A stretch of 64,000 nt of DNA from Macrostomum hystrix (lineage: Eukaryota > Animalia > Platyhelminthes). The number at the start of each line of letters is the position of its first letter. Position 1 is the stretch's first letter. The position numbers and the translations under genes were made by a program. Shown here in pieces: positions 1 to 59,518 of the stretch. The notes under the pieces were generated by a model that had not been told where the DNA came from, did not search any database, and saw only the letters and a list, made by a program, of their open reading frames with translations. Location of the stretch: the NCBI GenBank assembly GCA_950097015.1, contig CATNEN010000003.1, positions 11,284,001 to 11,348,000 on the forward strand, written 5' to 3'.

Positions 1-210
1 TCTTAGAAATTCAACGTACCAGCAAATAATGTTTAACAAACTCAAAACATTTTTTAAAAATTCTGATAGAACTATATTCATAGAAGACTTACAGACTTTC
101 TCAGAAAAAAGCAAATAACTTATAACGAAAATGTTTAACTATAAGAATCCCTTGATAAGAATAAGCAAAAAATTAATTCTAAAGAGACTACCTTGCGTAG
201 CGTGGCGCAT

Positions 211-534
211 TTAGAATTTCGTGCAGCAGAACCCGCCTGTCAACAAACGGGGCACCCATCCCATTGTCAGTTTCAACATGCCAAGATCCACAGACAAGAT
301 CGATCCGATCAATTGAGGCTTTCGGACTCTCCAGTCGATCCGCCAACTCTCTTGCAGTCCGACGGGAATTTTCCTGTATCCTTTATCCTGTATCCTGTAA
401 CCTTCACCCCTTGAATCTGTGATTGTTAATGGAGAGATCGGACGGCCACGGTTGGCTGTGTCATCAGCAACGTCTGTTCGCCCATGACTGAACTCTTCAA
501 GCCAGCGATAGACAGCACTCTGCGAGATGGGACT
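211..534 (-). mobile_element. Degenerate Tc1/mariner (mariner-type) transposase fragment, N-terminal HTH region
   Basis: Stop-to-stop frame on the minus strand, absent from the ORF track, reads SQSAVYRWLEEFSHGRTDVADDTANRGRPIS...ILSVDLGMLKLTMGWVPRLLT. This matches the mariner motifs VYRW..F..GR....D..R.GRP and the WVPHEL-type linker. No start codon and no DD34D domain visible. Confidence 0.75.
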
Positions 535-1655
535 CTACGTGGAATTCAGTCAGCTGGATTACGATTTCATTACCTCGCTTCCACAATTTCCACTGTGAGT
601 ACACGAACTGGCGTTGATCTTTTTGGACGAAACGCTAAACATTGAACGATCGCACAAGGGAAAAGGAAAAACTCTAAACTCGACAGCGGCATCTTGTCGA
701 GGCGTACACAATGTCGATATCCGCGATGTGCTTGCTGCCTTTGGTGCCACGGATATCTCTTGCGTCAGCTTGTGCTTCTTTTGATTCTGGTGCTCACGCT
801 TCTCTGCTTGTCTGTTGCCTTTTTCTGCTTCTGTTTTCTAATGCTTCGGCTCATTTTCTTCTGTCGCAAAATTTTCGTCTATGGACAAACTTGGGTTGGG
901 GCCTTGACTTGGTGTAATTCAACCCCTTACCCCTTGTTCTAATTTTAGCCATGAATTTTAAATGAATTGACATTTTTAATTGATTCAAAAAGCCTTTGAA
1001 CTTTTGAATGTTTATTTATCAGTGACGTCAGTTTCAGTAAATTTAGTTTTACTACTTAGCTGGTGCATCGAGCTTTCCCACTATTTTTGGGACACCCCTC
1101 GTAGCTAAAATACAAAAAAGCCACAAGTCCAACTATTTATTTATGAAGCTACGAGTACAAGCCCAAAAGAGAAGGAAACAATATTTTATTACGAGTATAA
1201 TACTCGTAGATTAGTATCAAATAACTCCTGTGTATTTGTGCAAACTTTTGGTTGATGTTTAAACGATCATAATAAACGTCATAACAAAGAGTTTAAAATC
1301 ATAACAAAGTGTGTTCTAAACCGTATAAAAACCGATATTTCGTAGAATCTTATTTTATCATATTTATAAACGTCTTGCGAGAAGGGCCCGAATAAATATA
1401 GAAACTTAGATAGTTATAGGTTTATATATTTCAGAACATTGTCTAAAACTGAAAATCGGAATTGTTATAGATTAAAAATTTAATAGTACGAGCGTACATA
1501 ATATTTCAGCATATCGTTACTTGGTGGTCCTAGCCTCTCGCCAAATCTTGTAACTGAAGCAAGCTTATAACTTTTTTTTAACGCTGATAATATATAAATA
1601 TCCAGTTAAGAGTATTTTTATTATCGCTTAACAGAGTGGCGGTAGAGACTGAAAG

Positions 1656-2854
1656 TCAGACGGAGTCGCATAGAATATGCAGCTGCTGAAAATCGTTCAA
1701 ACCGAACGCTTTCGTACTCAATCCGTAGCACATCATGCTACCCTTGAGACAACCTGAGTCTAAACTCGAGTAACCCAGATTTAAACTCTCAAACAGACTC
1801 GGAGAGAACACAACGGTCTGGTGGTAGGCATGGAACACCGCGCCGACGGAGCCATTGATGAAGAAGTGCTGATGAGCCGTTTCGTTGAAAGCGAAACCAA
1901 CTGAAACATCTCGCTGAAGTCCATCAACGGGCAAGTTTGCAGGTGACAGCGAGAACAGTCCCGCTTCGTTGCTGTTAAGGTTGAATACGGCTCCGTTGTA
2001 GAAGTGGTCGTCTTTCTTGGCGAATGTATTGCCACCACCGCCGTCGCGCTGCATGAACCTGTGGTAGAACTGAAATCTAAAGCGTTTTGATGAATATTTT
2101 TATCAATCATTCTTGCTTGATACTATCGAAAAGCAACTTGACCGAATTTCAAGCTTTTTTTCTCACCCAAAACTAAAGGCATGCCTGACTCGAGTGAAGG
2201 CTGAAAACTGCTTGCCTAAGCCAAGCACTTCAGCGAATCCAGGAGTCTCAGTGCGCAGGTATGAGGCCGTGTCACCCCTGAACAGGGCTCCAGCGGCATT
2301 GATTGTGATGTTGTGAGCCGTGAGGCAGAACAGTCTCGGGTTGACCTCATTGACCAGACCGCTCCGAGAGAACTTGTAGAACATCTTCATCTGCAGCTGG
2401 CTGAACACGGGCTTGGCCACATCTGAAATGCGTGCGTGAATGCTCAGCTTGGTGACTGAGTGACTCCAATGCACTGATGGGATTGGCATGCAGCCAGTGC
2501 AGCCAGAGTGACAGCTCAGCTGTGCAACTCACCGCAGTCTCCACACAGCACATCGGTGTACTTGTAAGAGTCGCAGTCACCGGCAGTCCACTGAGCGAGC
2601 TCGGAACACGCGTCTCCGAGGTAGCACTTGTTGTTGGGCTGGTCAAAGTGGAACGCGTTGCATCGGGGCTGCTGACTGCAGACAGCGGCGCACTGCAGCC
2701 TGCTGGCCAGCCTCTGAGCCTGCAGGGAGGCGGCTGCAGTGGGGCAGCTTCTGACTTTGACAGCCGAGAAATACGGCAGCATTCTAGCGCAGGAGTTTAG
2801 CGTGAAAATATTCAGCAGCAGAAGAATGCTCAGAATCCCATCGTTAAGTGCCAT
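1656..2854 (-). CDS. Secreted PAN/Apple + ConA-like (LamG/pentraxin-type) domain protein, copy 1 (~332 aa); exons 2854-2533, 2422-2167, 2076-1656
   Basis: Hydrophobic leader, PAN motif CAAVCSQQPRCNAFHFDQPNNKCYL, and GT-AG introns (2532-2423, 2166-2077) that join the three ORFs in frame. The C-terminal region has F.G...SYL, HFFING, LNLG and LKGSMMCYGLSTKAF...DFQQL, resembling Laminin_G_3/pentraxin folds (domain call by pattern only). Confidence 0.85.
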
Positions 2855-4060
2855 ATTAGAAACTTTGGTGTCCTGGACAGACGCTATAACTTCAAAAGCA
2901 CGTTAATAGTTAGTTATTCAGTATTATTACCTTCAGCGATTTCGCTGTTTTACATGACTTTGTGACGGCTTGTTATTGGCTGACCAATCAATAATTGATC
3001 GCAAGAACTCATAACACGGATTCACTTTTACCCTGGAGCCGAGATCTGATTTTTTCAGCAGTTAGTTGAATAATTTTTTGGACTCGCATTTTTATTACTT
3101 CATGCGTTTTTGCTCTTCCAACTGAAAATGAATGGGTTTTAGAAAATAACATTTGAATGAGCACTGACATACAGAGACACATATTCATGAAAAAGTCTCA
3201 CAAAGCCACTGTCTATACTTGTCGTGGTCCAATTAATTTATCATATTTTACCGTATATTAGCAAGCGAATCGAATCAAGAATCAAGAATATTAAACTAAG
3301 TTTAAAGCTGACTAGAGGCACAAAATATATTTACACATTGAGTTGACTTTAAGTTTAAAAGCAAATCATTTCTTTACTAACATGTGATATTGTTAGTCGT
3401 ATTGGACCATTGTCACAAACAGAGTCATTTTCTTGTGTCTCCAATGTAGCATCAATAGAAAAAGTTGTGAAATTTTCTTAAGCCATCTTAATTATTTTTA
3501 CTTTTTTATTGAACACAATCACTTCATTTTAATTGAAGTCTAAGTTACTGCATGGTATTTTTTTTCTGAACGTCGATTCGTTTCCTTAGCGTTGTCGAAG
3601 CGTATTCGAAACGGGCGTTGAGAAAGTGTGAGGGCAAGGCAAAAAAGCTATTTAAATTTCTGAGCTCTATATAGAGTTGACTGCAGAATAATAATTTCCT
3701 GCTAATAGTAATTGATATGTCAGCAGATGAAAATTTACTTTAACCAAAGAGAGCCCGAAAACACACGTTAGTCGTTAAAAAAATTAACAAGTGTTCATAG
3801 CTAGGGTTTATGATGCTTAAATGTCACACGGTTCCGACACTCCTGTGTATCCTCCAAAAATTTGTTTATTAGTAAATCAAGTATGTAATTTAGTTTACTC
3901 TTAGCCGTGTCAATTTATTATGACTGAATAGGAAAATATATGGTCGTATACTCGTCACGGCAAATCATTTTTTGTTTTAGTTGACACAGTTTTCTCACTG
4001 AGGATCCCATGCAACGGTTTAAATTTTTCAATAGAAAAAATCTGTTTTTTCCTTCACGTG

Positions 4061-5256
4061 TCAGTCTTCATCGCAGAGTTGCTGTAGAAGCAGAAATTCA
4101 TTTAATGTCAGAACTTTTGAGCTGAAACCATAGCAGTACATGAGACCATTCAGACAGTTGGAATCTGTGGTCGACTGTCCCAGGTTCAGACAGTCAAACA
4201 GGTCCGGCGAGTACGTAGTTGACCCGATCGTGAACGAGTCGACAGCAACAATGGAGCGGTTCAAGTAGAAGTGCTGGTGCCTGGTCCCATCGAAGGCATA
4301 GCCAGCCGAGATCACTCGCGTCCGTCCGTCAGCAGGCAGGACTGTCGACGGTGAGTAAGAGTGAATAACTTCCCCGCTGCCGCTCCGAACCAACTTCATT
4401 GCGTCATAGATGCCGCCGTCTTTCTGAATGAATGAGTTCCCGAAACTGCTGTCGCACCTCAGAAACTTGTGATAATATTGCAGTCTGAAATAGGGCATGA
4501 AGAAGGTGCAAACAACAGCTGGTGGATGCAGAGAAGCTGAAACTGAATTATTCACGCACCCGGAGTCAAACACATGCCGGGCATTGACGAAAGCAGAATG
4601 AACCGCACTTTCTTTGAAAATATCTTTTAGCAGCAATTTCTCTAGAGTCAAGTAGGACGTACTGCGGCCCTTGAAGTGTGCGCCAGCTGCATCGACTGTC
4701 ACGTCAAAAGACTTAAGACAGAGCCTTCGTGAATTGACCTCATTGACCAGACCGCTCCGAGAGAACTTGTAGAACATCTTCATCTGCAGCTGGCTGAACA
4801 CGGGCTTGGCCACATCTGAAATGCGTGCGTGAATGCTCAGCTTGGTGACTGAGTGACTCCAATGCACTGATGGGATTGGCATGCAGCCTGTGCAGCCAGA
4901 GTGACAGCTCAGCTGTGCAACTCACCGCAGTCTCCACACAGCACATCGGTGTACTTGTAAGAGTCGCAGTCACCGGCAGTCCACTGAGCGAGCTCGGAAC
5001 ACGCATCTCCGAGGTAGCACTTGTTGTTGGGCTGGTCAAAGTGGAACGCGTTGCATCGGGGCTGCTGACTGCAGACAGCGGCGCACTGCAGCCTGCTGGC
5101 CAGCCTCTGAGGCAGCAGGGAGGCGGCTGCAGTGGGGCACTGCCTGCTGCTCTCGAATGACAGCTTGACGGCTGTAGCTGTGTAGCTCAGGCAAAGAAGT
5201 ACCAGTAGTCGTACCCTGAAGGCAGTATCGCATTGACAGTACTGACACAGCTTCAT
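4061..5256 (-). CDS. PAN/Apple + ConA-like protein, copy 2 (~336 aa); exons 5256-4926, 4815-4560, 4484-4061
   Basis: ATG at 5256 (the ORF-track start at 5328 is TTG). Same intron positions and phases as copy 1. Intron 2 (4559-4485, 75 bp) is in frame and stop-free. Confidence 0.85.
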
Positions 5257-5995
5257 GTTTGGTCTGGTTCTGTAAAATTTTCTGGTCGAATCTAGAGTAG
5301 CTGGCGTTGGCAAAGATACATGCTCCAAATATGTATATTCTTACCTCAACCCAAGGGAGAAGTCTGTCAATTCTCGAGAGGCCTTGTGCATAGCTTAGTG
5401 GCTGCATGATAGCCTCAAGAGCCGGCTTTCTCTCTGTCTCCAAAGTTTCTTCTAAAAGAGTGAAACGTGCACATTGCCCGTCCACAGAAGACTTGGGACT
5501 CAGGTTGATTGAGTGCGCTATTCTCATTGTTGAATTAGAAATCCAGAAGTGCTCTGGATATTTGTGAATTCTTTCATCTAAAATATACTCATTCTACAAA
5601 ATTCTCTGAAGATTTTAGAAGCTTTCAATCACTGAAGTGTTCTGAGTGCTACTTAACATTGCAAAGGCTGCTAGTTAGGAGTATCGACGAAGGATGAGCT
5701 TTGATCCTCTAAAAAACGTCCGGAGTTTTTTTAATCTTTCAAAGCTAATTAAAGAAATTTGTTTTACGTGGCTCTTCGGCTTGTCGTGGTTTTTGCGTCC
5801 AGATCTGAAGTCATTCGTTAAAAACTACATTGCCATTGACCAATGAATTTACAATCGTCACATCGTCCTAAGAATACTTTACTAAAACGTTAAGACCTCC
5901 GGCTCGTTTAAGGTACATAAGACTGGAGCTTTAGATTTCAGTAAATTAAAATATAAAGTAAAAGAAAGTTAGTTTGACAATGACAATAAAAACAA

Positions 5996-6296
5996 TTGCA
6001 GGATAATAATGGCTGTGGGCAATGGAACGCTTTTTGGTGACATTGAACCTTCAGGAGGCAATTCTGCCCATTTCGCTGACTCCTGAGCACACACGCACAC
6101 ATATACCGTGCGCACGCATACGCTCACACAGGTGTGTACATCTGCCCTGACTTTCTCATCGATAGGCAGTGTTCACTCTCACTGTGCATTGGAGGTTGGC
6201 CCCCCCCCAATATAATGTGGCCTCGCCGCGGAATCGAGCTCAGGGACCTTGGTGCGAGAGGCAAACGCGTTAGACCACACTGCCTGCCACTCACCC
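5996..6296 (-). mobile_element. tRNA-derived SINE family A, diverged copy
   Basis: Homologous to 22087-22437 and 32651-32995 (shared ctgcccatttcgctgactcctgagcacacacg...ggaccttggtgcgagaggcaaacgcg). Confidence 0.75.
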
Positions 6297-7257
6297 CTCG
6301 AAGTTCTACTTCAGTAAAACAAAAAAGGGGACGTTTATTTGATTACACTCGCATTGTGCTGCTCTCCGAGGCTTTGACGGACAGCGCTAGAGCGCATCTC
6401 TAGTGGTTGCTGAGGCCACCTGCAGTATAATACTGAGATAGCTCTCTGAGCACTGACTCAAACGCCCGATAGACAGATGCTCGATTCAGACCGTTCCATG
6501 GCCGCAGTTGTCCTGGCCTTAAGCCACAGTCTGTGGACAGATAATCGAAGCAAGAACTTTCACGTATTTGATTGTTGCGTCTTCAATATTAGAGAGCTGA
6601 GACAATAGCCTGACTATTGTACTTGAATGCTCGGTTGCACTTCTACAAAGTTTTCTGGCGCATGTCAATGTCCCACAAGTTCAAGAAGCATCCAAAGCAA
6701 AACTGTCCAGTGTTATTCCAGTGTTCGGGCTGTAGTGATACTATATTAGCTGTCAATAAAGTAGAGGTGAACCAACTAAGTGGAAAGTATGCATGACCGC
6801 GATAGAAACTAAAACACATTGTTAAAAACAAAAATAGAGCTCCTGAATGGAGAAAAAATCAATTAGTTCTATTATACTTATTTCATTATAATCGCCGTAT
6901 TTTATAGAAGAAAATATTTGAGTTTATTGATTACACCTGCCCCAAATTGGGCCAGATGAGCAGCCGACAACGCGTAATTGCGCGGCGCATTTTAAAGCTG
7001 TTAGGCTACAACCATTTAAGTCAGCGTTTAAAAATCTAACTTAATTTGATTTAATCGAGCTCAACTTAACAACAAAGAAAAACAAACATAAATAATGGAA
7101 AGTTTCTAATACTCTAAAAATACAATAGAATACAGTTAAAAATACAATATTCCAAAAATGTCTTAGGGAAAATTTAAGGCAAAAATATTTTCACATATTT
7201 AGTCTCTCAAATAGACTTCTCACGGACACAAACTGTATTTATTTTTTACGTCAGATT

Positions 7258-8459
7258 TCAGATTTCGTCACAGAGCTGCTGGATCTGCTCAAACTCGGTC
7301 TGGCTGAGCACTTTGGTGCTGAATGCGTAGCAGAACATGCGACCTTCCAGACAGTTGGCATCGATTCTTGGAATAGCTTGGCCAAGGTGCAGGCAGTCAA
7401 ACAGATTTGTGTTATAGGATGCACCTGCATTAAAAGGTGGGTCAGCCGAAACCATCGAGCCATTGGAGAAGAAGTGCTGGTTCGCTGTTCCGTTGAAGGA
7501 GAATCCCAAGGAGTTCGTCAGTCGACCGCTAGATGGCAGCACAGAGGGCGATGATAAAATAAGCCCAAACTCACTGGCTCCTTGCCTGAAGACGGCCGTG
7601 TTGTAAATCATTCTGTTTAACTTAAAGAACTGATGGCCAGGAATTCCAGAACCACAGGAAACGAAGTTGTGATAGAATTGTCGCCTGCGAAAAGAGACAG
7701 GATGAAATTAAGCCATAAAAAATGAAATCAATGGCTTTGGGATTTAAAAAACCGAGTCTGACCCAGTGCCGAAATTGTGGCTCGCACTGACGAAGGTGGA
7801 GAACTGGCTGCCATAATCAAGGTGCTTAGCAAAGCCGGGAGTCTCAGTGCGCAGGTATGAGCCCAGGTAGCCTTTGAACTGAGCTCCATTGCCATCTATG
7901 GTCACATTGTGAGCCGTGAGGCAGAACAGTCTCGGGTTGACCTCATTGACCAGACCGCTCCGAGAGAACTTGTAGAACATCTTCATCTGCAGCTGGCTGA
8001 ACACGGGCTTGGCCACATCTGAAATGCGTGCGTGAATGCTCAGCTTGGTGACTGAGTGACTCCAATGCACTGATGGGATTGGCATGCAGCCAGTGCAGCC
8101 AGAGTGACAGCTCAGCTGTGCAACTCACCGCAGTCTCCACACAGCACATCGGTGTACTTGTAAGAGTCGCAGTCACCGGCAGTCCACTGAGCGAGCTCGG
8201 AACACGCGTCTCCGAGGTAGCACTTGTTGTTGGGCTGGTCAAAGTGGAACGCGTTGCAGGTTCTCAGTTGACTGCAGACAGCGGCGCACTGCAGCCTGCT
8301 GGCCAGCCTCTGAGCCAGCAGAGAGGCGGCTGCAGTGGGGCACTGCCTGCTGCTCTCGAATGACAGCAGCTTGGCACCAGAAGCAGCTGCAGTCAAGCTG
8401 TGGCACAGCAGCATGAGCAGAATGAACCATGCCACGGCTGTGCAGTCTAGGTTAGCCAT
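7258..8459 (-). CDS. PAN/Apple + ConA-like protein, copy 3 (~337 aa); exons 8459-8129, 8018-7763, 7684-7258
   Basis: Leader MANLDCTAVAWFILLMLLCHS. GT-AG introns 8128-8019 and 7762-7685 restore one reading frame. Confidence 0.87.
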
Positions 8460-8596
8460 GTGAGCTTCAAGCTGGTAAAGTAATATAAGCTAGTAAAATC
8501 TTTCAAAGTCAGCTAAGTAACTTTTTCGGAGCTCTTCTTATGCTTCCTGACAGGGTGGATCGAGAAAAATGCAGCCGGTGTCAATCAGGCTACAAG

Positions 8597-8643
8597 CCAG
8601 AAGCAGCTGCAGTCAAGCTGTGGAATAGCAGTAAAAGTAGCAT
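8597..8643 (-). pseudogene. Orphan signal-peptide fragment of the PAN-ConA family (MLLLLLFHSLTAAASG)
   Basis: 27 bp at 8597-8623 are identical to 8377-8403 in copy 3 exon 1 and continue into a different hydrophobic leader. Nothing of the gene follows it. Confidence 0.7.
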
Positions 8644-9499
8644 GACGGAGAGCTTGCTAGCTCCTCTCAGACAGACAATAGGCTTTATCACTTGCCTGGG
8701 TCTGTTGCAACTTACAAGACTCTGTTTGCCTTGCATGGTTCACTTGCTTTTATGCATTTTGCTAAGAACCTGAAACAATTGATGTTTCGTTATTTGCTTC
8801 TGCCTGTCAGCTTAGGACAGCTTGGTGTCAGCTTGGTGTCAGCTTGGTGTCAGCTGTCACCATGGAGTCACACAAAACTCTGTCCTTGCGCTGCGTTCCT
8901 GCTCGTAGCCCAGTTGAGGCTCAGGCCTGAACTTGAGAGGGAACGAGACGAGTGGCCTGGTGGTTTTTTCCATTATAATTAAACAGTGCAAAAAAGTTCA
9001 AGAGTAGTTGGCAGAAATGTAGGATGAGCAAACACTCTGCGACTTGTCACCAAGGAAACGGGCATCCAAGGAAGAGAGGTACCGCGCAGCCAGTCTTCTC
9101 CGGTTCCTGAGTGTTAAGAACGTGCAGAATCGCTGCAGAAATTTTTTTACTGAAAGTCTTTGCCAATGCAGTTCTGTTGCAAACCGGATTTATCAATGCC
9201 AAGAAAGATTTGCTCCATGATCCTGTCGGCAGATACCTACTTGTCCACTTTATAGATTCGTCAATGGGAGGAGCAGAGAAATCACATGATCTACAGCAAG
9301 ACCAGCCACCAGCTAAGCGCATTTACTATTTTGACTACCAGAAACTGTTTGGAGAAGCCATGTCTGTATTTTCCTCTTCGCAGATTTATGCTATTCTTCA
9401 ACAGCAAAAGTGGAGCGCCGAGTGGAAAAGTAAATCAGGCAAGAGACAAATAGAGATGACGAGTTTAGTGCTGCCGGACGATATTTACCTTGATGGCAT

Positions 9500-9975
9500 G
9501 TTCGACTGCTTGCCGAGCGTTGAAGACATCGAGAGATCAATGGGCGAGCTGTCACGAGTGTCAATACCAGACGTCAAACGGATCATTACGTCAAAGAGAT
9601 GTTCGACTTCACGGCATCGACGCCGTCGTTAAACATTGACTTGATGACGACGGCTGAGCTGGAGTACGTTGACCGTGTGCTGCGATAGTTCTACGGCACG
9701 GCTCATAGGACAGACGGGGGATATTATATAGCTATATACCGCTACATGATGCCGGACAGGCAACTAAAGATCATCGAGGGCGATGCTTTCAGGGCGATGC
9801 TTTCTATGCTGCAAACGCGACTCTGAAGGCGTTGGCGCGGAAGTTTATCTTTGAGGGCGGTCGCGCGAAGCATTTCCAAGCTGTTAAACTGGAGGACATG
9901 CAAAAATTATCGCGATACTATGACAGGCAGTCTCCTACGGCTTTGCTGCACGAGGTTTATCTCAATGTTTTGGAA
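9500..9975 (+). mobile_element. Degenerate Crypton-like (DUF3504/ZMYM/KCTD1-type tyrosine recombinase family) fragment
   Basis: Reading through a stop and a 14 bp duplication frameshift gives ELEYVDRVLR*FYGTAHRTDGGYY...AIYRYM...LKIIEGDAF/YAANATLKALARKFIFEGGRAKHFQAVKLEDMQKLSRYYDRQSPTALLHEVYLNV. This resembles the Crypton N-terminal pattern L..FY...R..DG..Y...AI.R....II.D..F..AN..L. The catalytic YR part is not seen. Confidence 0.6.
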
Positions 9976-10315
9976 ACGCGCATCAGGCCGAGTAGCCAAG
10001 TAGATGATGGCATCGAGGCAGTCAAGCCTGAGTATAGACGATCAGATTGCCTAGCCGCTTGCGCGCAATCGAGGCTCTCCTGCTGACTATGCCGCTGAAG
10101 GATGACTATGGTAGCGTACTGACTCGCCTGAAGCGGGAGGTGGTGTTTCAGCAGAGCAACCAGCTACTGTTACAGGCCAGCGGTCTTGTCAAGCACGTTG
10201 AACAGCAGCATCGGGCGCTGAAGAGTCGATGAAATTTCCGCAAAATCTGGGTCGCGATGCCGATACTGCCGCCAGGACAGAAGACTTGAAGCGCTTTGAT
10301 TGACGGCCAGTCAAA

Positions 10316-10608
10316 GTGTCAAAAGATTCTGAGGATCTGAGGATGGTGTCAGAAGATTCTGAGGATCTGAGGATGGTGTCAGAAGATTCTGAGGATCTGA
10401 GGATAATGTCAGAAGATTCTGAGGATCTGAGGATAATGTCAGAAGATTCTGAGGATCTGAGGATAATGTCAGAAGATTCTGAGGATCTGAGGATAATGTC
10501 AGAAGATTCTGAGGATCTGAGGATCTGAGGATGGTGTCAGAAGATTCTGAGGATCTGAGGATCTGAGGATGGTGTCAGAAGATTCTGAGGATCTGAGGAT
10601 GGTGTCAA
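10316..10608. repeat. 30 bp minisatellite (GTGTCAGAAGATTCTGAGGATCTGAGGATG)n
   Basis: About 9 tandem units, directly visible. Confidence 0.95.
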
Positions 10609-11163
10609 AAGCAGATTTTTAAGGTTTTTGCTAATTTTTTTCATGTTTTCAAACTCGTATTATTCTTAGTAGTCATTTTAGTGACCAGAGAAAAAAGTTA
10701 AATTATTTCTTTATTTAGTAAATAAGCCAACCACAGTTAACCAATGACACTTTAACAGTCTAGTTTATTTTATTTTTAGAATTCAAAAAGTTCTAAACCA
10801 GATGGGTTTAGACTCTTATAAATTTATTGCTATAAAAAAGAAAACATTGAGATAAGTGGTAGCTAATATTGAGGTGATAAACAGTAAGACATTGATTGTT
10901 GGCTGTTTAAGCATCAGGGTCTAGGCCTCAGTTTTCCACTGAAGCTGTGATTTTTAGTCATCAGAAATGTAGTCAAGTTGAGTCCTTGAAAAATAGCTCG
11001 TGTAATCAATAGAAAAATATAAAGTGCAAAACTCAAAACTCATTCTCAAGTAACTTGCAGAAAAAATACAATTAATAACTAATAGTGAGCCGTAATCAAT
11101 TTCTCGCCTTGACAGCCATCTGACAGTCTGGCAGTTTGACAGTCAATACATTTTCGTCAGATT

Positions 11164-12366
11164 TCAGATTTCGTCACAGAGCTGCTGGATCTGCTCAAAC
11201 TCGGTCTGGCTGAGCACTTTGGTGCTGAATGCGTAGCAGAACATCCGGCCTTCCAGGCAGTGGGCATCGTTTCTTGGAAAAGCTTGGCCAAGGTGCAGGC
11301 AGTCAAAGAAACTTGTGTTATAGGATGCACCTGCATTAATAGGTGGGTCAGCCGAAACCATCGAGCCGTTGGAGAAGAAGTGCTGGTTCGTTGTTCCGTT
11401 GAAGGAGAATCCCAAGGAGTTCGTCAGTCGACCGCTGGATGGCAGCACAGAGGGTGATGACAGCATGAGCTGAAACTCACTGGCTCCTTGCTTGAAGACA
11501 GCTATGTTGTAAATCATTCTGTTAAACTTAAAGAACTGATGGCCAGGAGTTCCAGAACCACAGGAAACGAAATTGTGGTAGTATTGTCGCCTGCGAAAAG
11601 AGACAGGATGAAATTAGGCCATAAACAATTTAAATCAATGGCGTTGCGATTTAAAAAACAGAGGCTGACCCATTGCCGAAATTGTGGCTCGCACTGACGA
11701 AGGTGGAGAACTGGCTGCCATAATCAAGGTGCTTAGCAAAGCCGGGAGTCTCAGTGCGCAGGTATGAGCCCAGGTAGCCTTTGAACTGAGCTCCATTGCC
11801 ATCTATGGTCACATTGTGAGCCGTGAGGCAGAACAGTCTCGGGTTGACCTCATTGACCAGACCGCTCCGAGAGAACTTGTAGAACATCTTCATCTGCAGC
11901 TGGCTGAACACGGGCTTGGCCACATCTGAAATGCGTGCGTGAATGCTCAGCTTGGTGACTGAGTGACTCCAATGCACTGATGGGATTGGCATGCAGCCAG
12001 TGCAGCCAGAGTGACAGCTCAGCTGTGCAACTCACCGCAGTCTCCACACAGCACATCGGTGTACTTGTAAGAGTCGCAGTCACCGGCAGTCCACTGAGCG
12101 AGCTCGGAACACGCGTCTCCGAGGTAGCACTTGTTGTTGGGCTGGTCAAAGTGGAACGCGTTGCATCGGGGCTGCTGACTGCAGACAGCGGCGCACTGCA
12201 GCCTGCTGGCCAGCCTGTGAGCCAGCAGGGAGGCGGCTGCAGTGGGGCACTGCCTGCTGCTCTCGAATGACAGAAGCTTGACACCAGAAGCAGCTGTAGT
12301 GAAGCTGTGGCACAGCAGCATGAGCAGAATGAACCATGCCACGGCTGTGCAGTCTAGGTTAGCCAT
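11164..12366 (-). CDS. PAN/Apple + ConA-like protein, copy 4 (~337 aa); exons 12366-12036, 11925-11670, 11590-11164
   Basis: Closest paralogue of copy 3. GT-AG introns 12035-11926 and 11669-11591. Confidence 0.87.
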
Positions 12367-13390
12367 GTGAGCTTCAAGCTGGTAAAGTAATATAAGCTAG
12401 TAAAATCTTTCAAAGTCAGCTAAGTAACTTTTTCGGAGCTCTTATGCTTCTTATGCTTCCTGACAGGATGGATCGAGAAAGATGCAGCCGGTGTCAATCA
12501 GGCTACAAGCATTTTAATTTCACGGCACCGAATGCACCTAATATAGGCGACATTGTTAGCACGGCAAGTTAGTCTGCATTTGTTGGCGATTGTCGTGAAA
12601 TGGCTTTGCTATGGGGGACTCCAGTTTACACTGTCTCTGCTTGGCTGACGATTCCGTCGATGGCAAGTCTCTGAAACGCAAACATCATGACAATGGCGGC
12701 GTGTAAATGGAGTCAATTCCCGACTGCTTCCTGTTTGGGCTGAAACTGAATGCTGTTATTATCTTGCTTTCATTGCCCCAATCTCGCGCCCAGCTAGAGT
12801 TTGACTGACGGGCCAAACTCTCCGTTGTATCGAAAGATTTTGTAACGATCTCTGTGAGCTGGGGAATGACTTTGAAGCGGATGCACATTCATAGTCGATG
12901 AACACATCTATTTGCTCCGAAGCCAGCCGCTTAGAAACTTTTTTACCTGGAATAAATGCGACATGCAGAAAATCTAATATATTTAAAGTCCAACATGAGA
13001 AACATGTCTGCGTCGTGTTTTTTTAGAATTCGTGAGAACTATTTTTCCACATCAATGTTCTCATACCAGGCAGTTGAGGACCTGTTATAGTCTGGTTTGA
13101 ATATAGAATAGAAGTTGAATAGTCCTTTCTGTCCCTCTCACTTAAAAAACAGTCTAGCTTAACTGACAATGCTTCGATTTCAAGATAAGTCCAGTTAGCC
13201 TGTCATTATGGCATTTCTTAAGAACTTTTTAACATATTTTTCGAATCATTTCTTTGCTCTGTATTTTATTTTGTACCGAATAGTCACTAGGAGTAAAAAG
13301 CTGGGATGTCATTATACTGTTATTGTTAGGTATCCAATATATTTCTCAGAAAAACAACACTGAGAGCTTCTGATTTCACAAAGTCAACAG

Positions 13391-14618
13391 CTAGGCTTGT
13401 ACACAGAGTTGCTCCAACGTAGAAAACTCAGCTGAACTGAAGGCTTTCAAAGCCAAGCCGTAGCAAGCGATGCTGCCCAGCAGGCACTTGTCGCTGATGC
13501 TGTGGTAGCCGAGTCGAAGGCACTGGAACTCTGCGAGTGGCGCAGGATCCACACCGCCATCAAACTGACCGACTGCAGTCAGGGTTCCGTTGAAGAAGAA
13601 GCGACTCTGCTGGGTAGCAGAGTAGGTCATGCCCAAGGACAGAGTTCTGGATGTTCCTGAGATGCCAAAGAGCTTGTTTGAGACGGCTTTCAGATAGCCG
13701 AATGAACTGTGGCTGGAGGACCAGGCCGCGTAGTTGTACACGAACTCGGAGCTGCGACCAAATGTGTTCGATGGACTGCTGGTGTCGCCGGAGCAGACTT
13801 GGTAGCGATGGTAGATGCGGTTGCTGCAGTTGAGAATAGCGTATGCGTGTTTTAATTAACCTTCAAGCAAGGAAACTTAATGAATGACAAAATCAACAAT
13901 GAAAAACAATTGTACTACCTCAAGTCCAAGACTTCAGATATCAGCATATAGAATGAGTAGCTTCTACCATAGTCAAGGTATGCCTCGAATCCGGGAGTTG
14001 CAGTGCTCAGGTAAGAGCTCGGATTGCCCTTGAAGTGGGCACCTCTGGCATCTATGATCACATTGTGAGCCGTGAGGCAGAACAGTCTCGGGTTGACCTC
14101 ATTGACCAGACCGCTCCGAGAGAACTTGTAGAACATCTTCATCTGCAGCTGGCTGAACACGGGCTTGGCCACATCTGAAATGCGTGCGTGAATGCTCAGC
14201 TTGGTGACTGAGTGACTCCAATGCACTGATGGGATTGGCATGCAGCCAGTGCAGCCAGAGTGACAGCTCAGCTGTGCAACTCACCGCAGTCTCCACACAG
14301 CACATCGGTGTACTTGTAAGAGTCGCAGTCACCGGCAGTCCACTGAGCGAGCTCGGAACACGCGTCTCCGAGGTAGCACTTGTTGTTGGGCTGGTCAAAG
14401 TGGAACGCGTTGCATCGGGGCTGCTGACTGCAGACAGCGGCGCACTGCAGCCTGCTGGCCAGCCTCTGAGCCTGCAGAGAGGCGGCTGCAGTGGGGCAGC
14501 TTCGGACCTTGACAGCCGAGAAATACGGCAGCACTCGAACAGCGGTGGTGCCAGTCAGGCTATGCAAAAGCAGATGCCAGTTCAGGCTGAATATCGTAGA
14601 AAATCCTCTATACTTCAT
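13391..14618 (-). CDS. PAN/Apple + ConA-like protein, copy 5 (~340 aa); exons 14618-14285, 14174-13919, 13823-13391
   Basis: ATG at 14618. GT-AG introns 14284-14175 and 13918-13824 give a continuous frame ending ...FSSAEFSTLEQLCVQA. Confidence 0.85.
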
Positions 14619-15256
14619 GATTGGCAAGCTTTTTCAGTCTAATACAGGATTATAGAGCATCGCATTGAGCAACAATTGCTGTTTTATTTAAAATTTCCTA
14701 ACCCTCGTCGTTTAGCGTGTGGAATCTAGTATCAGAACAAATATCATTTGTAGAAATTATGGGCATTGGCAGCGAGAGCATTGTTCTTGGAAAGCAAACT
14801 TATGTGCCGTGTTTTTGCACGCGAAGCTTGAAATTCTGTTTGTTTTTGTTAGAATTGGAGTTGTCGCTCGATTGCCTCGAGCCAAAATCATTGCCTAGTT
14901 TCATCACTTTTCTAGGAAAAACCAGTAGTCCATTCAGGGATGAAAATCAACGAGTAGGCTCTATATGAAATCTGTACGCTGGTATAACTCTTTTGTAGCA
15001 ATGGAAGTATAATAAAAATGATTATCTGCTTAGCTTTATTCACGAAAACGGTTATATTGAGTAGCGCAGTTGTAGTGCTAGGATCTCGTACCGAAGTTTC
15101 CGAGCTCAAATCCGCAGCGAGTCCACATTCATTTTGAGGCATTTCGCGCATTTAGGGCCCCTTAAGGAACTCGCGTTGTACAGTGTTTGTCTGAGTTCGT
15201 ATCTGTGTGTGCATGTGTTCTTTTTCTGCAATACTCGTTATAGTTAAGGTATCGAA

Positions 15257-15605
15257 ATTAGTTCACTTCTGCTGGGGGGTATTAGTTCTCTGTTGCTGGG
15301 GTGGCATTAGTTCGTTGCAGCTTGGGGAATTAGTTCACTGTTGCTGGGGGCATTAGTTCTGTGTTGCTGGGGGACACTAGTTCTCTGTTGCTGGGGGGGC
15401 ATTAGTTCTGTGTTGCTGGGGGGCATTAGTTCTCTGTTGCTGGGGGGACATTAGTTCTCTGTTTTTGGGGCATTAGTTTACTGCTGCTGGGGGACATTAG
15501 TACACTTCTGCTGGGGGGACATTAGTTCTCTGTTGCTGGGGTATTAGTTCTCTGTTGCTGGGGTATTAGGTCTCTGTTGCTAGGGGTATTAGGTTTGTCT
15601 CTGTT
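15257..15605. repeat. ~23-25 bp degenerate minisatellite (ATTAGTTCTCTGTTGCTGGGGGGC)n
   Basis: Visible tandem units with variable G-runs. Confidence 0.9.
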
Positions 15606-16293
15606 ATAGTGGACAGGATTATGTTTGTGCCACCCAGAGGGGGGGGCTAAATGGGTAGTAACTATTCTAAAACTTTCAAGACCACAGAAAGATGCACTTA
15701 TAAAGCATCGCATGACGAAGGACACTTTCTGGGCTATGAAAACAGAGGAAAGCTTGTGACTACAAATTTATCTCTGGGAGAAAGTCATCAAGGAAGCAGT
15801 GACAATACCCATCGCATCAATGTCGACTTGGACCACCCAAATTCGTTTTTACCTCGCACTCTTTGGCGAGTGCCAATTGTACCAAGGCAAACAGAGAGCT
15901 TCGGTCCTAAAGTAAATATACAAAATAACACATCAATGCGAATTCGGCTGCAGAATTCAACCATTCAGATGCGTTCGACCTTGCAAACCCATACGATGCG
16001 GGTCTCAGGAAATCTCTCTCTCTTTTTTCCTTCTTTTCTTTAGGCCAACAGCTATAAGATTTTTCTTCTATTGAATCTTCTGGTTCAGGCCGAGTGGTCC
16101 TCGGTCAGAGTGGAAGTGGAATAGGAAATAAAGGAGAGAGACGCGTTGACTTAAGGTTCGTGTCAACTTATATCATTCATTTTCTGTCATGTTAAATGAG
16201 AATTTGTCGTTTAAGAGTAAGAGAATGAAGTGAAAAAAGGTCACGTTAATTGTGCTTCTGAGGTACAGCTCTACAGTGAGACACTTTTTTATC

Positions 16294-19271
16294 ATGTCAG
16301 AAAGTGGCGGAGACCCAGCAAAAATCCGCAAAGCCAAGTCACTTCTGTGCTTCTTGTTAGTTAGCATATCTGCCGGCATTGCCTACAATGCATCCTACGT
16401 TTTCCTGTCAAGCATGACAACAACTCTTGAACGACGCTTCGGATTCGATTCGGAGGACACCGGGCACATCATTGTGGCCAATGATATCGGCTTTGCGGCC
16501 ACCGTGACTCTAGTAAGTTTCTATGGCAACAGGGGGCACAGGCCGCGAGTACTCGGTCTGGGCGCCGTTGTTATGGGCCTGTCCACAGCCGCATACGCTC
16601 TGCCATACTTTGTCTATGGGCCTAAGTACTCGGACGCTGAAATCGCTCGCTACCTAACACTAACGGAGCAGCGAGCCTTGCAGAACTACAGTCAAGGCGC
16701 TGCCTCAACTATCGACGGAAGCGATTTACTCTGTCGCGTTGAATCAGCATCCGTACCGAACGAGCTCTTCAACAGATCCTCAGATTCAACACCATCTTTA
16801 ACGTCTACCACTCTGACATCAGAATCATCAGCTAGCAGTCAGGCCGACGCTCGCGATGTAGTTTTTGTCGTCTTCATGATAGTCGGCATAGTTCAAGGCG
16901 CAGCTTCAGCACCCTCCTGGTCAGTGCTTTTCACCATGGTCGAAGACTCGGCCACCGAGGCGCGCTCGCCAATCTACATCGGTCTGGTGATTACGGCTCG
17001 ATCGATTTCGCCCATGCTTGGCTACTATCTGGTTGGACAGTTTTTAGCGTTGCACGAGTCGCTTCAAGCGTCGGGTCTTCGCGAGTCCGACAGCCTTTGG
17101 ATCGGCAACTGGTGGCTGGGATTTCTCAGCCTGGGATTGATAACAAGCATCCTCGGTTTTCCCATGCTGCTATTTCCTCGCCAGCTGGAGGATCATATTC
17201 CTTGCTGCTCGGCAAGATCGGCTGCCAGTGTACAGAAGGATGTACAGGATGGCGACGAGGATCTCGAAGAGAATCTTCCACTGGAGGACGCGACGGCAAA
17301 CGTCGGGCGTCGTTTGAGTCGCCACAGATCGTGCGAATCTCAGCCAACCGGCTCCGGAAGGTGGGCGAAATTTCTTCACAGCCTGAGAGACCTGTCTCTG
17401 GCTGTAAAGCGCACAATGACCAACGCAATCCTCATGCTGGTCATGCTGTCTTGTGTGGTCAGCTTGCTGGGTTCGGGTCTCGAAGTTCTGTTTATTGTGA
17501 AGTATTACGAGAACTACTTCAATGTGCTGCCCTCGGCTGCAGGTCAATACGTTGGCATGACTTACGCCTTGCCAACGGCCTTAGCAACACTGGCTGGGGG
17601 CTACCTGGTATCTCGTCTGCGGCTGGACGTTGTCGGCATGATGCGTCTGATCTGCGGCATCTTCCTCGTCACTACTGTGCTCAATGCGCCCGCCTTCTTT
17701 ATGGACTGCCCATCGGAGAGGCTGAATCCGGCGACGTGAGTGCAACTTTCCAAGAATTTTGGATTGAAGTTTCTTTTGCTGAGAAAACAACTTTTACGAA
17801 TCTTTTACGCACAGAATCTTGGCTATCGCTGGCGACAATGTCTCAAGCGGTGGTTGCGCTTCAAACTGCGGCTGCGACCCCACTCTGGTTAATAATCTGC
17901 CCGTGTGCGGAGCTGATGGCAATTTCTACCTGTCTCCGTGTCACGCGGGTTGCACTGGAACAGTCGTTGGCGCCGCTGTTAATGAGACTGAATCAGTAAG
18001 AACACCTCGTAGAAAATTTTAGTCAAACTGGTGTTTTGATACTGTTAAAGGAATTCTTGGTAGCTAAATTGTTTATTTTGCTACTAAGGTCCCTGAACTC
18101 GATTGAAGCAATATTTAACTGATCTTCATTTGCATGCATGTATGATCGTTCAAGTGCGAATTAATTTAATTTTCTGACTTCAGGCCACAGAATCAAAGTT
18201 CAGCAACTGTCGGTGCTTGGAGAGCATGCAGTTGGACAATGCCTCTTCATCAAGCCCCGCTGTCAACACGGCTAGAGCAGGTGGCTGTCAGGGAGTCTGT
18301 AACATGGTTTACGCATTCTCAGTGCTGAAATTTATCGCTCACTTTGTCGATGGACTGTCCTATGTGTCTTGGTTTCTGCTAGTGATGAGGTAGGACTATT
18401 ATTACACTTTCTTTACGTAATAACATGAATTATTTCGTTATTTAAAAAAAGATAAAACACTTTGTTTTTTTGTTTTTTTAGAATCACAGACTCAAAAGAC
18501 GACGAAGCCATGGGTGTTGGAATAATTTCATTATTTTTTAGCTTGGCTGGTAAGTAGGATTATTACTGGCACATCTTTTGAGGACACTAGACCCTCAGCC
18601 AGCGAGGAGGCAATTCTGCCAGTTTGGCTGACTCCTGAGCACACACGCACACACAGATACTGTACGCAGGCACACGATCACACATGGGAGTGTACATGTG
18701 CCCAGAATTTCTCATTGTCATGCAGTGTACACTCTCATTGTAACTTCAATTTCTGTATCGTTTGATTTAAACAAAATAATCTACGTTAATTAAGCGACAA
18801 GAAACTTGCCAAAAAGATGAGCAACTTCTGAGTATAACGCTTTTTATTATATAGTTAAGTAAGCAAAAATTATAACGATTATAATGGTAAAAGACCTTAT
18901 AAATTCCGCAGAATTATAAAATATGTAAACTTTTTAAACCTAAAAGTTCTGCTATTTGTGTTACAGCATCGATCATGGGCGGGTTCTGTGGCAGAATCTA
19001 TGAGTCTGCTTGCCTAGCGACTACCAGCGGGTCGGCAGGCGAGCGCAACTGCCTGCTGTACGACCGTCAGAGACTTCGAATCCTGTTCAACGGAATCCCG
19101 ATGCTAGCTAGGGTGCCCTACTTTGCCCTGCTGCTAGCTGCCTATCTGCTAATTAAAAGACGTTTCGGATTTAGCAGCATTGAAGTGGTGCAACAGCAGT
19201 CGAACTTGGATGAAAATGAAGGCATTGAGAATGCTGATAACTGTGCCAGTAACAATGAAGCTGCAGTATAG
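16294..19271 (+). CDS. SLCO: Organic anion transporting polypeptide (OATP/SLCO family), ~733 aa; exons 16294-17735, 17815-17995, 18184-18389, 18482-18549, 18967-19271
   Basis: Motifs TTLERRF, VSFYG...HRPR..G.G, the OATP signature D..WIGNWWLGF and FPRQL. Kazal-like loop C..NC.C......PVCGADG..YLSPCHAGC and the terminal C...G..NC..YD. All four GT-AG junctions keep phase. Confidence 0.93.
18565..18742 (-). mobile_element. SINE family A, partial copy in SLCO intron 4
   Basis: Matches the body of 22087-22280. Confidence 0.7.
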
Positions 19272-47094: not shown

Positions 47095-48597
47095 ATGGCC
47101 GATTTAAGCAGCAGCAGTGGCTCCGGCTATTCTAGCAGCGGAGCTGGCAGTGACAGCAGTAGTCGGAGCAGCAGTCGAAGCAGCAGTCTAGGTCGGCATC
47201 GGAATCGTCACCGTCATCAGCATCGTCATCATCACCATGAGCCTAGACTAAGTCGCAGTCTCCAGCGTCAACAGCTTCATCAACAGCAAGATGATAGCGA
47301 TGATGCTGTTGTTCCAGTAGGTCATCAGACAGCTGGCCCGTCAGTTGTCTTACCCATGTCAGTCATAATAACTGCGAAGCCCGATGCTGCAATTGGAAAT
47401 TCGTCTTTAATTTCGGATAGTCAAGCTTCAACATCGGCTAGTGTTCCCATGCCAACGGCTTGGCCAGAATCGCTAATTGTTAATTGTTCTTTGCCGGGTA
47501 GTACTGTAAATGCTGCCGAAACAAGCAACTCTAGTCAGCAGCATCAGTATTCCCTGGATCAGACTTGCCTATCTAAACTGGCTTATCAACAGGCGAAGCA
47601 GCAGCAGCAGCAGCAGCCAACAATGGCTCCAGTAGCAATGGCCGGGCCTAGTAGCGGCTCAGCCTGCGGTGTTGCTCGGCCAAAATATCCTCTGCAGGAT
47701 GATTCGGAATATTCCAGCTACGAATCTCTGCTAGGCGCCGCTGACTGCGGTGGCGGTCGAGGTCGTTCCACCTCTTCTAAGCCATTCTGCCGCATCTGTC
47801 ATCTGCCTGGTGACGAGTGCGCCAGCGGCGCAGCCGGCGACGTCAGTGCAGCCTCAGCCGCTGTTGGCGTCGCCGCCGGAAATCGTCTTCTATTATCGCC
47901 CTGTCGTTGTTCCGGCACTCTTCAGCACGTCCATCCGGCCTGTCTAGCCAAATGGATTGAAGCTTCGGCTAGGATTCGTCGCTCCATGGATCCAGCCGCT
48001 GAGGCTGAGCGTCGCAGACGCAACGGCGGTCGCCATAGAAACGGCCGCTCGCCACCCAGATGCGAGTTGTGCAATTATGAGTACAGGCGTAGGGTGAAAT
48101 TCAGTCTAGCCGCTAACGGTGGCTGGCGCTTTCCCAGAGTGTCGCGCGGCGACCGCGTCCTCCATTTGATCTTTCTACTGTGCCTGATTGTTATGACAGC
48201 CTGCGCGGTCATCACTGTCATGTGCTTTGTTAGGGATCGGGACAGGCCTATGGTTGGTGGCCAGCAGCAGCAGCAGACACACTTGGCGGTTGGATCAGCG
48301 GCCTCGCTACCTTCTGCATCGTCTTCGTCGTCTGCTTCATTGACGCCCGGTGAAGCGGCTTCTAAACAGCAGCCGCAGCATCCGCATCAGTCGCCGCCGA
48401 CTCCACTAGTATTGACTAGTTACGAAGCTCTGACACTAGTGTCCGGTATATTATTCTTTCTGGCATTCTTCACAGCTATGAGTGTGCAAATTAAAAGTCG
48501 GCACACTGTTTACAAACTCATGGTAAAATGTTACAGGATGAATATTACTTATTCGTTTCTACCGTACGAGCGGGCCAGGGATCAGCAGTGTGCCTAG
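47095..48597 (+). CDS. MARCH: MARCH-family RING-CH (RINGv) membrane E3 ubiquitin ligase, 500 aa, single coding exon
   Basis: CRIC...LLSPCRCSGTLQHVHPACLAKWI...CELC (C4HC3), followed by two hydrophobic segments (VLHLIFLLCLIVMTACAVITVMCFV and LTLVSGILFFLAFFTAMSV). Confidence 0.92.
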   Translation: MADLSSSSGSGYSSSGAGSDSSSRSSSRSSSLGRHRNRHRHQHRHHHHEPRLSRSLQRQQLHQQQDDSDDAVVPVGHQTAGPSVVLPMSVIITAKPDAAIGNSSLISDSQASTSASVPMPTAWPESLIVNCSLPGSTVNAAETSNSSQQHQYSLDQTCLSKLAYQQAKQQQQQQPTMAPVAMAGPSSGSACGVARPKYPLQDDSEYSSYESLLGAADCGGGRGRSTSSKPFCRICHLPGDECASGAAGDVSAASAAVGVAAGNRLLLSPCRCSGTLQHVHPACLAKWIEASARIRRSMDPAAEAERRRRNGGRHRNGRSPPRCELCNYEYRRRVKFSLAANGGWRFPRVSRGDRVLHLIFLLCLIVMTACAVITVMCFVRDRDRPMVGGQQQQQTHLAVGSAASLPSASSSSSASLTPGEAASKQQPQHPHQSPPTPLVLTSYEALTLVSGILFFLAFFTAMSVQIKSRHTVYKLMVKCYRMNITYSFLPYERARDQQCA

Positions 48598-58393: not shown

Positions 58394-59518
58394 ATGTGGT
58401 CGCCAACATCACGGCTGCTGTTGCTGCTTCTAATAGCAGCGGCGGCAACAGTTCCGCATTATCCAGTTAGTGCTCAACTACAGAACCCGGACTACAATGG
58501 CAAAGCTTCAGTTCGCTTGAGCACACTCTACGACAAGAAGGACGATTCGGTTGACAAGTCGTGGCCGCCGGCTGCCAGCGGCGAATTCGCCAGAATCGAC
58601 GTCACCGTGATGGGCAAGAAGGTGAGCGGAGCGGCCGTCAACAGCATGGAGCCGCATCTGGACCAGATGAAGCCCAAGAAGCTAAGAAAAGTTCTCGACG
58701 GCGACCTAGACCCGAATTGGGTGTCGATAGATCGGCCTAGACAAGCCGACGCGGCTGCCGGCAATGACTCAGCTGTTGGACAATCGACCAGAGCATCGAG
58801 CAGCGGCACAACTGCTCAACTGCCGCCACAGTCGGCCCCGGATCCCAAACTGTTGGCCCACCTGGACAAGCTCAATCTGCGAACAATGCGGGACGATCTC
58901 GGCCAGCTAGTCACCTTCGATGATAAGACAGTCTACATGTTCAAATCCTGGCTAATGAAGCAGGCCGCATGCCCCGTGGAATACCTGTGGGAAGATCTGG
59001 GCGCCCTGTTCTGGCCCAGATGGATTCGGCGCGGAGTCTGCAGCTCGTTTAGCAGCTGCAGCTGGCCTCCTGGCATGAAGTGTCGCAAGAGCGGCCAGAA
59101 GGAGCTCAAAGTCCTCCGCTGGGTCTGCAACGACAAGGCCTCCATGGACGACGCTCAGGATCCGCGGCGTGGCGCTCGACGCCGATCTGCCGACGGTCGG
59201 CGGGCCGACGCCGGTCGACGCAGACGTCAGAGACGTCGCGGTAGGCGACGCCAGAGACAAACGCGCGACGGCAACAATCCGGGAGCCGCAGCCGGAGCCG
59301 GCTCGTCGGCAGCAGCTGCCGCGTCTTCTTCCGCGTCTAGCGACGATTCTCGCCCCCTGCCGGAGGGCTGGCAGGCCCGACCCAGGCGACGCGAAGGTCG
59401 CGAGAAGCGTCGACGACGACTGATTATGCGCCTGTCCAAGACTTTCGGAGACTATTTCTGCTACTGGAGGCAGATTAACTATTACGTGACAGACAGGTGC
59501 GCATGTATGTGCTCTTGA
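58394..59518 (+). CDS. nlg: Noggin-like protein (noggin domain with a long insertion), 374 aa, intronless
   Basis: Signal peptide; CPVEYLWEDLGALFWPRWIRRGVC....SCSWPPGMKC...LRWVC, then an insertion of ~110 aa, then CYWRQINYYVTDRCACMC. This is the noggin cystine-knot pattern with an insertion between Cys5 and Cys6, as in noggin-like genes. Confidence 0.92.
   Translation: MWSPTSRLLLLLLIAAAATVPHYPVSAQLQNPDYNGKASVRLSTLYDKKDDSVDKSWPPAASGEFARIDVTVMGKKVSGAAVNSMEPHLDQMKPKKLRKVLDGDLDPNWVSIDRPRQADAAAGNDSAVGQSTRASSSGTTAQLPPQSAPDPKLLAHLDKLNLRTMRDDLGQLVTFDDKTVYMFKSWLMKQAACPVEYLWEDLGALFWPRWIRRGVCSSFSSCSWPPGMKCRKSGQKELKVLRWVCNDKASMDDAQDPRRGARRRSADGRRADAGRRRRQRRRGRRRQRQTRDGNNPGAAAGAGSSAAAAASSSASSDDSRPLPEGWQARPRRREGREKRRRRLIMRLSKTFGDYFCYWRQINYYVTDRCACMCS

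Follow-up and report, generated by a model that had tools for sequence, protein, structure and literature searches.

A near-identical 5' cassette and deeply diverged C-terminal domains in a tandem array of PAN and jelly-roll genes of Macrostomum hystrix

Snail FREPs, sea-urchin 185/333 proteins and the products of conotoxin-type prepro genes are secreted proteins encoded by tandem gene families, in which a constant N-terminal part is joined to a variable C-terminal part. The same layout is seen in the stretch of the flatworm Macrostomum hystrix analysed here (64,000 nucleotides, contig C3:11,284,001-11,348,000, called the window below), in which five genes, c1 to c5, each encode a PAN/Apple domain followed by a C-terminal domain. 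In contrast to the described families, the window genes bear no mark of positive selection or of somatic diversification, and Pfam scans of window pieces and of their paralogues gave no match to the fibrinogen domain (PF00147). The constancy of their N-terminal part comes from gene conversion spanning an intron. A first, sequence-only reading had taken the cluster for a FREP-like recognition family, with a conserved shared module and a 'hypervariable' C-terminal domain. Our analysis indicates instead that the C-terminal domains come from paralogues that separated long ago and are held by purifying selection, and that the constant core is a derived feature of the array, produced by conversion.

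The five genes lie in the same orientation on the minus strand, between window positions 1656 and 14618. According to a repeat search of the window, successive copies lie 2393, 3203, 3907 and 2249 nt apart. Splice-site and frame analysis gave three exons for each gene, with GT..AG introns at identical positions in c1 to c5. With the conserved start of exon 2 on the minus strand as anchor, intron 1 measured 110 nt and exon 2 measured 256 nt, followed by GT, in all five copies. The length of intron 2 was 90, 75, 78, 79 and 95 nt in c1 to c5, respectively, the 75-nt intron of c2 being open in frame by chance. The start of exon 3 was set by frame-consistent AG acceptors located just 5' of a conserved (F/Y)YH(R/N/K)(F/Y) motif. 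None of the five spliced models, which encode proteins of 332-340 amino acids (Table 1), contains an internal stop. These models bear out the five intact, co-oriented three-exon genes that had been proposed from the letters, with their shared intron positions and 256-bp exon 2. As had also been noticed at first sight, the C-terminal half keeps a skeleton only: outside the constant part, the remaining ~197 amino acids were 28-47% identical between copies, save for c3 and c4 (92%), and the skeleton (GA.F.G, SYL, YH.F, F.NG, CL.LG, CY, LC) was visible in the five-copy alignment.

The constant part forms a cassette that covers the PAN-coding end of exon 1, runs through the entire intron 1 and stops 75-110 nt into exon 2. 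Over this cassette, all copies showed 98-100% nucleotide identity, in agreement with the near-identity of PAN domain and linker described earlier. In a sliding-window comparison, identity in the flanks of the cassette within the genes was 30-60%. In pairwise comparison, the tracts were 322-479 nt long and contained 0-5 mismatches; from pair to pair, their ends were staggered. For all pairs, synonymous divergence (dS) in the cassette was 0-0.10 and non-synonymous divergence (dN) 0-0.026. Contig C3 holds all 11 loci at which the cassette was found genome-wide. Ten linked genes spread over 1.15 Mb (10.146-11.298 Mb) carry it at 98-100% identity and the copy at 15.21 Mb at 92%; the same region is 74-76% identical, at the protein level, to that of the M. 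lignano protein P0003. The identity of the constant core, which extends to an intron and to synonymous sites, reflects gene conversion, and not a conserved module as such, as was first thought. We therefore read the cassette as a case of concerted evolution by recurrent gene conversion among linked genes.

The 5' identity might also be due to purifying selection on a DNA or RNA element, for example an RNA carried by the intron, or to a very recent segmental duplication, and the invariance of the entire intron 1 is in keeping with such explanations. However, a functional RNA in this intron was rejected: folding was no better than that of shuffled sequences (z -0.59) and no Rfam match was obtained over window positions 1-16000. 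A recent whole-gene duplication is excluded by the saturation of the cassette's flanks within these genes. The staggered tract ends and the drift of the distant copy at 15.21 Mb also speak against such explanations. We regard these explanations as highly improbable, and retain gene conversion as the source of the identity. A patch of about 9 c3-private substitutions in 10 nt was observed in exon 1 of c3 (about 8258-8267), within the cassette that is identical elsewhere, changing PAN QQPRC into QLRTC; it is also present in the messenger RNA contigs presented below. Two additional frames stay open through the cassette and across intron 1, in each copy: an antisense open reading frame (ORF) of 96-137 amino acids and a second sense frame of 99 amino acids (in c1, 2477-2800 on the plus strand and 2347-2646 on the minus strand). 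These extra ORFs are probably incidental, arising from composition and identity.

A different picture was obtained for the variable half. For all pairs but c3-c4, the proportion of synonymous differences (pS) was 0.66-0.84, that is, saturated, and dN was 0.45-0.86, so that the dN/dS ratio (omega) is not reliable for these pairs. For c3-c4, dS was 0.109, dN 0.036 and omega 0.34. The end branches of the tree measured 0.6-1.3 substitutions per site. The gene c4 appears to be a recent duplicate of the c3 type; its C-terminal domain groups with that of L009, the contig C3 locus at 15.21 Mb with the 92% cassette, and not with that of the adjacent c3 (support 100/89). The variable half of c5 shares 52% of its residues with M. 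lignano P0006, versus 28-37% with its window neighbours. At least one C-terminal type, that of c5, thus is older than the split between M. hystrix and M. lignano. Column entropy was alike in strands (2.09), helices (2.30) and loops (2.24). Because synonymous sites are saturated, the divergence of the C-terminal halves can be explained by age.

These values bear on the FREP-like interpretation, according to which the array would be a diversified repertoire, with positive selection acting on the C-terminal domain in an immune or self/non-self context and PAN serving as the constant region. The constant/variable layout, the tandem multiplicity, the lectin-type fold presented below and an expansion confined to the lineage would all fit such a repertoire. 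Nevertheless, the omega of the c3-c4 pair and the saturation of all other pairs leave the divergence to be explained by age, another species supplies at least one counterpart closer than the paralogues of the cluster, variation is not enriched in loops relative to strands, and no sign of somatic diversification or challenge response was found. We consider this interpretation unlikely; the term 'hypervariable' and the comparison with FREPs, both part of the sequence-only reading, have to be dropped. Old paralogues under purifying selection account better for the C-terminal domains.

Transcripts were found for c3. In one study of 2020, four runs contain contigs of 1069-1308 nt that match exon 3 and the 3' untranslated region (UTR) of c3 with 0 mismatches. 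The same contigs continue with exon 2 and exon 1 sequence, from which intron 1 is missing. As the comparison was limited to 6,000 nt of the window, the upstream exons of the contigs were compared with their counterparts in c1 and c2. They differed from these by 21 and 11 mismatches, exactly as predicted for a spliced c3 mRNA; a c4 origin would give 4 mismatches instead of 11. The 150 unplaced letters of the contigs correspond to 85 nt of exon 3 and 65 nt of exon 2, again as predicted from c3. Since both the mismatch counts and the 150-letter gap equal the c3 prediction, we conclude that c3 is transcribed and spliced exactly as modelled, which provides the spliced transcripts that had been named as a check on the cluster. 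No transcript contigs were found in the four runs for the unique parts of c1 and c2, a result that does not show these genes to be silent.

The N-terminal domain was assigned by profile comparison. PAN_1 (PF00024) matched exon 1 of c1 with 24.9 bits (E 1.8e-5), above the Pfam gathering cutoff of 21.4, in support of the PAN call made from the letters. In 15 family members, six cysteine columns were conserved fully or to at least 90% (C40, C58, C62, C68, C80 and C97, in c3 numbering). This pattern is compatible with the predicted PAN disulfide connectivity C1-C6, C2-C5, C3-C4. An AlphaFold2 (AF2) model of c3 exon 1 (predicted local distance difference test, pLDDT, 75.7; predicted template modelling score, pTM, 0.58) showed an N-terminal helix, presumed to be the signal peptide, followed by an alpha/beta module. 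The top Foldseek matches of the PAN model in the PDB were all PAN/Apple domains (SML-2, HGF N domain, MIC4, FXI and plasminogen), at a weak level (E of at least 0.012, template modelling score of about 0.45-0.5). The N-terminus is strongly hydrophobic in c1 to c4, with a maximum Kyte-Doolittle value of 2.25-2.91, and an N-x-S/T sequon is kept in 21 of 27 family members. To judge from these two features, c1 to c4 are probably secreted, as had been proposed for the whole cluster. For c5, the N-terminus is weakly hydrophobic (maximum 1.33; leader 14533-14618), so that its secretion is doubtful as modelled.

Exons 2 and 3 encode a divergent Laminin_G_3/ConA-like jelly roll. The fold was predicted with AF2 from a c2 stretch that is open through intron 2 (4064-4813, minus strand), aligned with 37 family pieces (alignment A2). 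The resulting model (pLDDT 83.9, pTM 0.83) is a two-sheet jelly-roll sandwich, for which Foldseek gave a best E of 8e-7. Using VIA-align, all 113 chains at Z of at least 8 were ConA-like. The closest structural matches, with 170-210 residues aligned, were domain 4 of AbnA, which is arabinan-binding (Z 18.2; 2.9 Å over 183 residues), the HcN jelly roll of clostridial neurotoxins (Z ~16) and sialidase CBM40 (Z 14-15). They were followed by collagen IX NC4 (Z 14), the thrombospondin-1 N domain (Z 14, in a TSPN range of 13-14), pentraxins (Z 13-14) and LNS domains (Z 11). As sequence identity to AbnA, CBM40 and HcN is 7-14% (7-12% for the Hc chains), the likeness is at the fold level only. A functional relationship to clostridial neurotoxins was rejected: the window proteins consist of PAN and one jelly roll, and lack an HcC beta-trefoil and any translocation, protease or enzyme domain.

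Profile searches led to the same superfamily. The A2 profile was searched exhaustively against 1.84 billion protein representatives and gave 145 matches. Below the Macrostomum proteins, these were LamG_3/pentaxin domains of Saccoglossus, Lingula, Ptychodera and bacteria (E 1e-9 to 1e-20), and the matched stretch was the LamG_3 or pentaxin domain in P0025, P0027, P0029, P0013 and P0023. The Atlas neighbours of the family were Laminin_G_3 clusters (score 0.98). A word-indexed homologue search with the open c2 stretch gave no match, the family being recovered later by the exhaustive profile search, and comparison of the family profile with PDB sequences gave a chance match alone (E 0.2). The best paralogue by Pfam Laminin_G_3 (PF13385, clan CL0004), the intronless L033, remained below threshold (19.3 bits for a cutoff of 27.6; E 0.0014). 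The pentraxin signature H-x-C-x-S/T-W-x-S/T was not found in any of the five proteins, nor was PF00354 matched in the Pfam search. The ConA-like or pentraxin-like fold first suggested is thus upheld at the superfamily level, by the model and the LamG_3 profile links, and not as a pentraxin proper. Of the two domains expected from profile and structure prediction, PAN_1 passed the Pfam threshold and the jelly roll was recovered as a model, with Laminin_G_3 itself staying below the Pfam threshold.

The family extends well beyond the window. A six-frame search of the genome gave 60 matches, corresponding to at least 43 loci that encode the C-terminal domain. Two clades were supported (96/98): three-exon genes, including c1 to c5, and intronless genes, often with Thr/Pro mucin-like linkers. 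The intronless paralogues L031-L042 share with the window genes the two-domain architecture, the cysteine skeleton and the conserved sequon, and differ from them by their single exon, the frequent mucin-like linker and the absence of the contig C3 cassette. In L031 (2030-3703; contig C14, 1.05 Mb), a Thr/Pro linker of about 250 amino acids made of TTPTTATP units separates the PAN-like and LamG-like domains. Such linkers, together with Z values of up to 14 to collagen IX NC4 and the thrombospondin-1 N domain, would be expected if the proteins were structural components of extracellular matrix, mucus or adhesive, using TSPN/LamG-type modules for matrix assembly and not for specific binding. However, the window copies have no mucin linker, their products are small, single-unit proteins, and the top structural matches are carbohydrate-binding modules; a structural role is accordingly given a low probability, specific binding by the jelly roll being preferred.

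Outside Macrostomum, no close relative was found among the 1.84 billion representatives searched with the A2 profile, and all close protein matches were from M. lignano. A0A1I8GWZ0 (P0003), A0A1I8HM75 (P0006) and PAA58135.1 (P0008), among others, belong to the same family, with a PAN-like domain and the same C-terminal domain (profile E 1e-55 to 1e-16). In the variable half, P0003 is 44-49% identical to the window copies, a value to be set beside that of P0006 and c5. The M. lignano relatives differ in coming from another species and in their automatic annotation, several gene models being fused or truncated, and in the cassette they stand well apart from the near-identity seen within M. hystrix. 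The M. lignano entries bear automatic names alone, such as 'Apple domain-containing protein'; the name 'Fibrinogen C-terminal' on two entries is also automatic and belongs to other gene models. We found no study of this Macrostomum family in the literature, and the M. lignano gene identifiers were not found in main texts or in the supplements of PMC5816591 and PMC10468722, in line with the statement that the family was not recognised as a described one.

Confinement to the genus would also suit reproductive proteins of a hypodermically inseminating hermaphrodite, present in seminal fluid or on the egg or sperm surface and evolving under sexual selection. Fast evolution of Macrostomum reproduction-related genes is reported in the title of PMC7336406. 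Against this possibility, the main text of a prostate in situ screen (PMC5977470) mentions no PAN, lectin or LamG proteins, and the sole testable pair, c3-c4, indicates purifying selection. We hold a reproductive role to be improbable, and favour lectin-like binders with old jelly rolls.

The more distant relatives show how far the domain combination itself is known. The LamG_3/pentaxin domains of XP_070535747 from Ptychodera flava (P0029), XP_006812501 from Saccoglossus (P0013) and XP_013404145 from Lingula (P0023) match the family profile in the E range given above, and Ptychodera P0029 likewise joins PAN_1 with LamG_3. These hemichordate and brachiopod proteins differ from the window proteins in being much larger, with multiple domains or repeats (EGF, up to nine pentaxin units). 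PAN and LamG_3 are therefore known domains in a combination known from the Ptychodera protein, and the array is not a new kind of system.

Taken as a whole, we think it rather probable that the window holds part of an old tandem array of Macrostomum-restricted, two-domain extracellular binders, with old jelly rolls, a converted PAN cassette and a partner shared through PAN. The array would be a segment of an old family whose members carry a signal peptide, a six-cysteine PAN/Apple domain and a Laminin_G_3-type jelly roll with a conserved N-glycosylation sequon. Recurrent gene conversion with staggered tract ends keeps a cassette of ~320-480 nt alike in the ten linked genes. Each jelly roll may bind an extracellular ligand of its own, probably a glycan, by analogy with its CBM40, pentraxin and LamG relatives, and the invariant PAN module may contact a partner common to all paralogues. 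The outcome would be a fixed set of sub-functionalised lectin-like proteins and not a rapidly diversifying repertoire.

Several points weigh against this explanation. The dN/dS estimate comes from one gene pair, c3-c4. The evidence of expression concerns c3 alone, in contigs from a single study whose library type is not declared. The folded c2 stretch includes 25 intron-encoded residues, which form the sole low-confidence loop of the model, and in Pfam no match reached threshold for the C-terminal pieces of the window (exon 2, exon 3 and the c2 stretch). The signal peptide of c5 is doubtful as modelled: translation may in fact begin at another position, or the peptide may have degenerated. Finally, we infer the type of ligand and the role of PAN from relatives of the fold. 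The structural and evolutionary part of the explanation is consequently much firmer than the functional part.

Table 1. Window coordinates of the five genes and of their 5' cassettes.
Feature	Strand	Coordinates	Protein (amino acids)	Remarks
Gene c1	minus	exon 1, 2854-2533; exon 2, 2422-2167; exon 3, 2076-1656	332	exon 1 encodes predicted signal peptide and PAN; exon 3 includes stop
Gene c2	minus	exon 1, 5256-4926; exon 2, 4815-4560; exon 3, 4484-4061	336	
Gene c3	minus	exon 1, 8459-8129; exon 2, 8018-7763; exon 3, 7684-7258	337	3' UTR to about 7167
Gene c4	minus	exon 1, 12366-12036; exon 2, 11925-11670; exon 3, 11590-11164	337	
Gene c5	minus	exon 1, 14618-14285; exon 2, 14174-13919; exon 3, 13823-13391	340	
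Cassette of c1	minus	2311-2746		includes intron 1 (2423-2532) and ~110 nt of exon 2; 0-4 mismatches over 352-479 nt
Cassette of c2	minus	4734-5139		3' boundary ~30 nt shorter than in other copies
Cassette of c3	minus	7907-8258		5' boundary shortened by the c3-private substitution patch
Cassette of c4	minus	11809-12249		from pairwise tract comparison
Cassette of c5	minus	14058-14498		to 14533 against c1, same leader type

Repeats of several kinds surround the genes. Between c2 and c3, the segment 6053-6276 reached a summed contig depth of about 1,800-7,500 in all four runs, with many divergent loose ends; it looks like a dispersed, transcribed repeat resembling a short interspersed element (SINE). 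A 30-nt minisatellite of 9 copies lies between c3 and c4 (10317-10611) and a 24-nt array of 14 copies directly upstream of c5 (15257-15586). Long mini- and microsatellite arrays at 19.6-20.3, 26.6-28.4, 38.6-40.8 and 52.0-54.2 kb give rise to spurious long ORFs. The intergenic ORFs 9111-9632, 9832-10086, 5036-5527 and 12685-12888 matched no Pfam family. Of the neighbouring genes on the plus strand, that at 16252-17739 encodes an OATP transporter (E 4e-79), that at 47095-48597 a RING-variant protein and that at 58394-59518 a Noggin homologue (E 3e-31); they confirm the metazoan context of the array.

The locus provides a clean, expressed case of intragenic mosaic concerted evolution, in which a cassette of ~0.4 kb together with its intron has been homogenised in ten genes over more than 1 Mb, the rest of the genes being saturated. 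It also defines a large, genus-restricted family of probably secreted PAN-LamG proteins for which no study was found. Macrostomum is a tractable model, in which RNA interference, transgenesis and in situ methods are established, and the third exons, being specific to each paralogue, make it easy to design tests of tissue, of knock-down and of glycan binding. The constant/variable layout might itself be a selected design, conversion being confined to or initiated in the cassette and leaving an identical PAN 'handle' and different jelly-roll 'heads' in about ten to eleven linked genes. We give this idea a small chance of being right; if true, the array would be a germline-encoded combinatorial recognition set in a basal flatworm, serving immunity, the handling of mucus or microbiome, or the recognition of gametes or partners. 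The reading of 'hypervariable recognition' should give way to that of 'ancient paralogues with a converted 5' cassette'.

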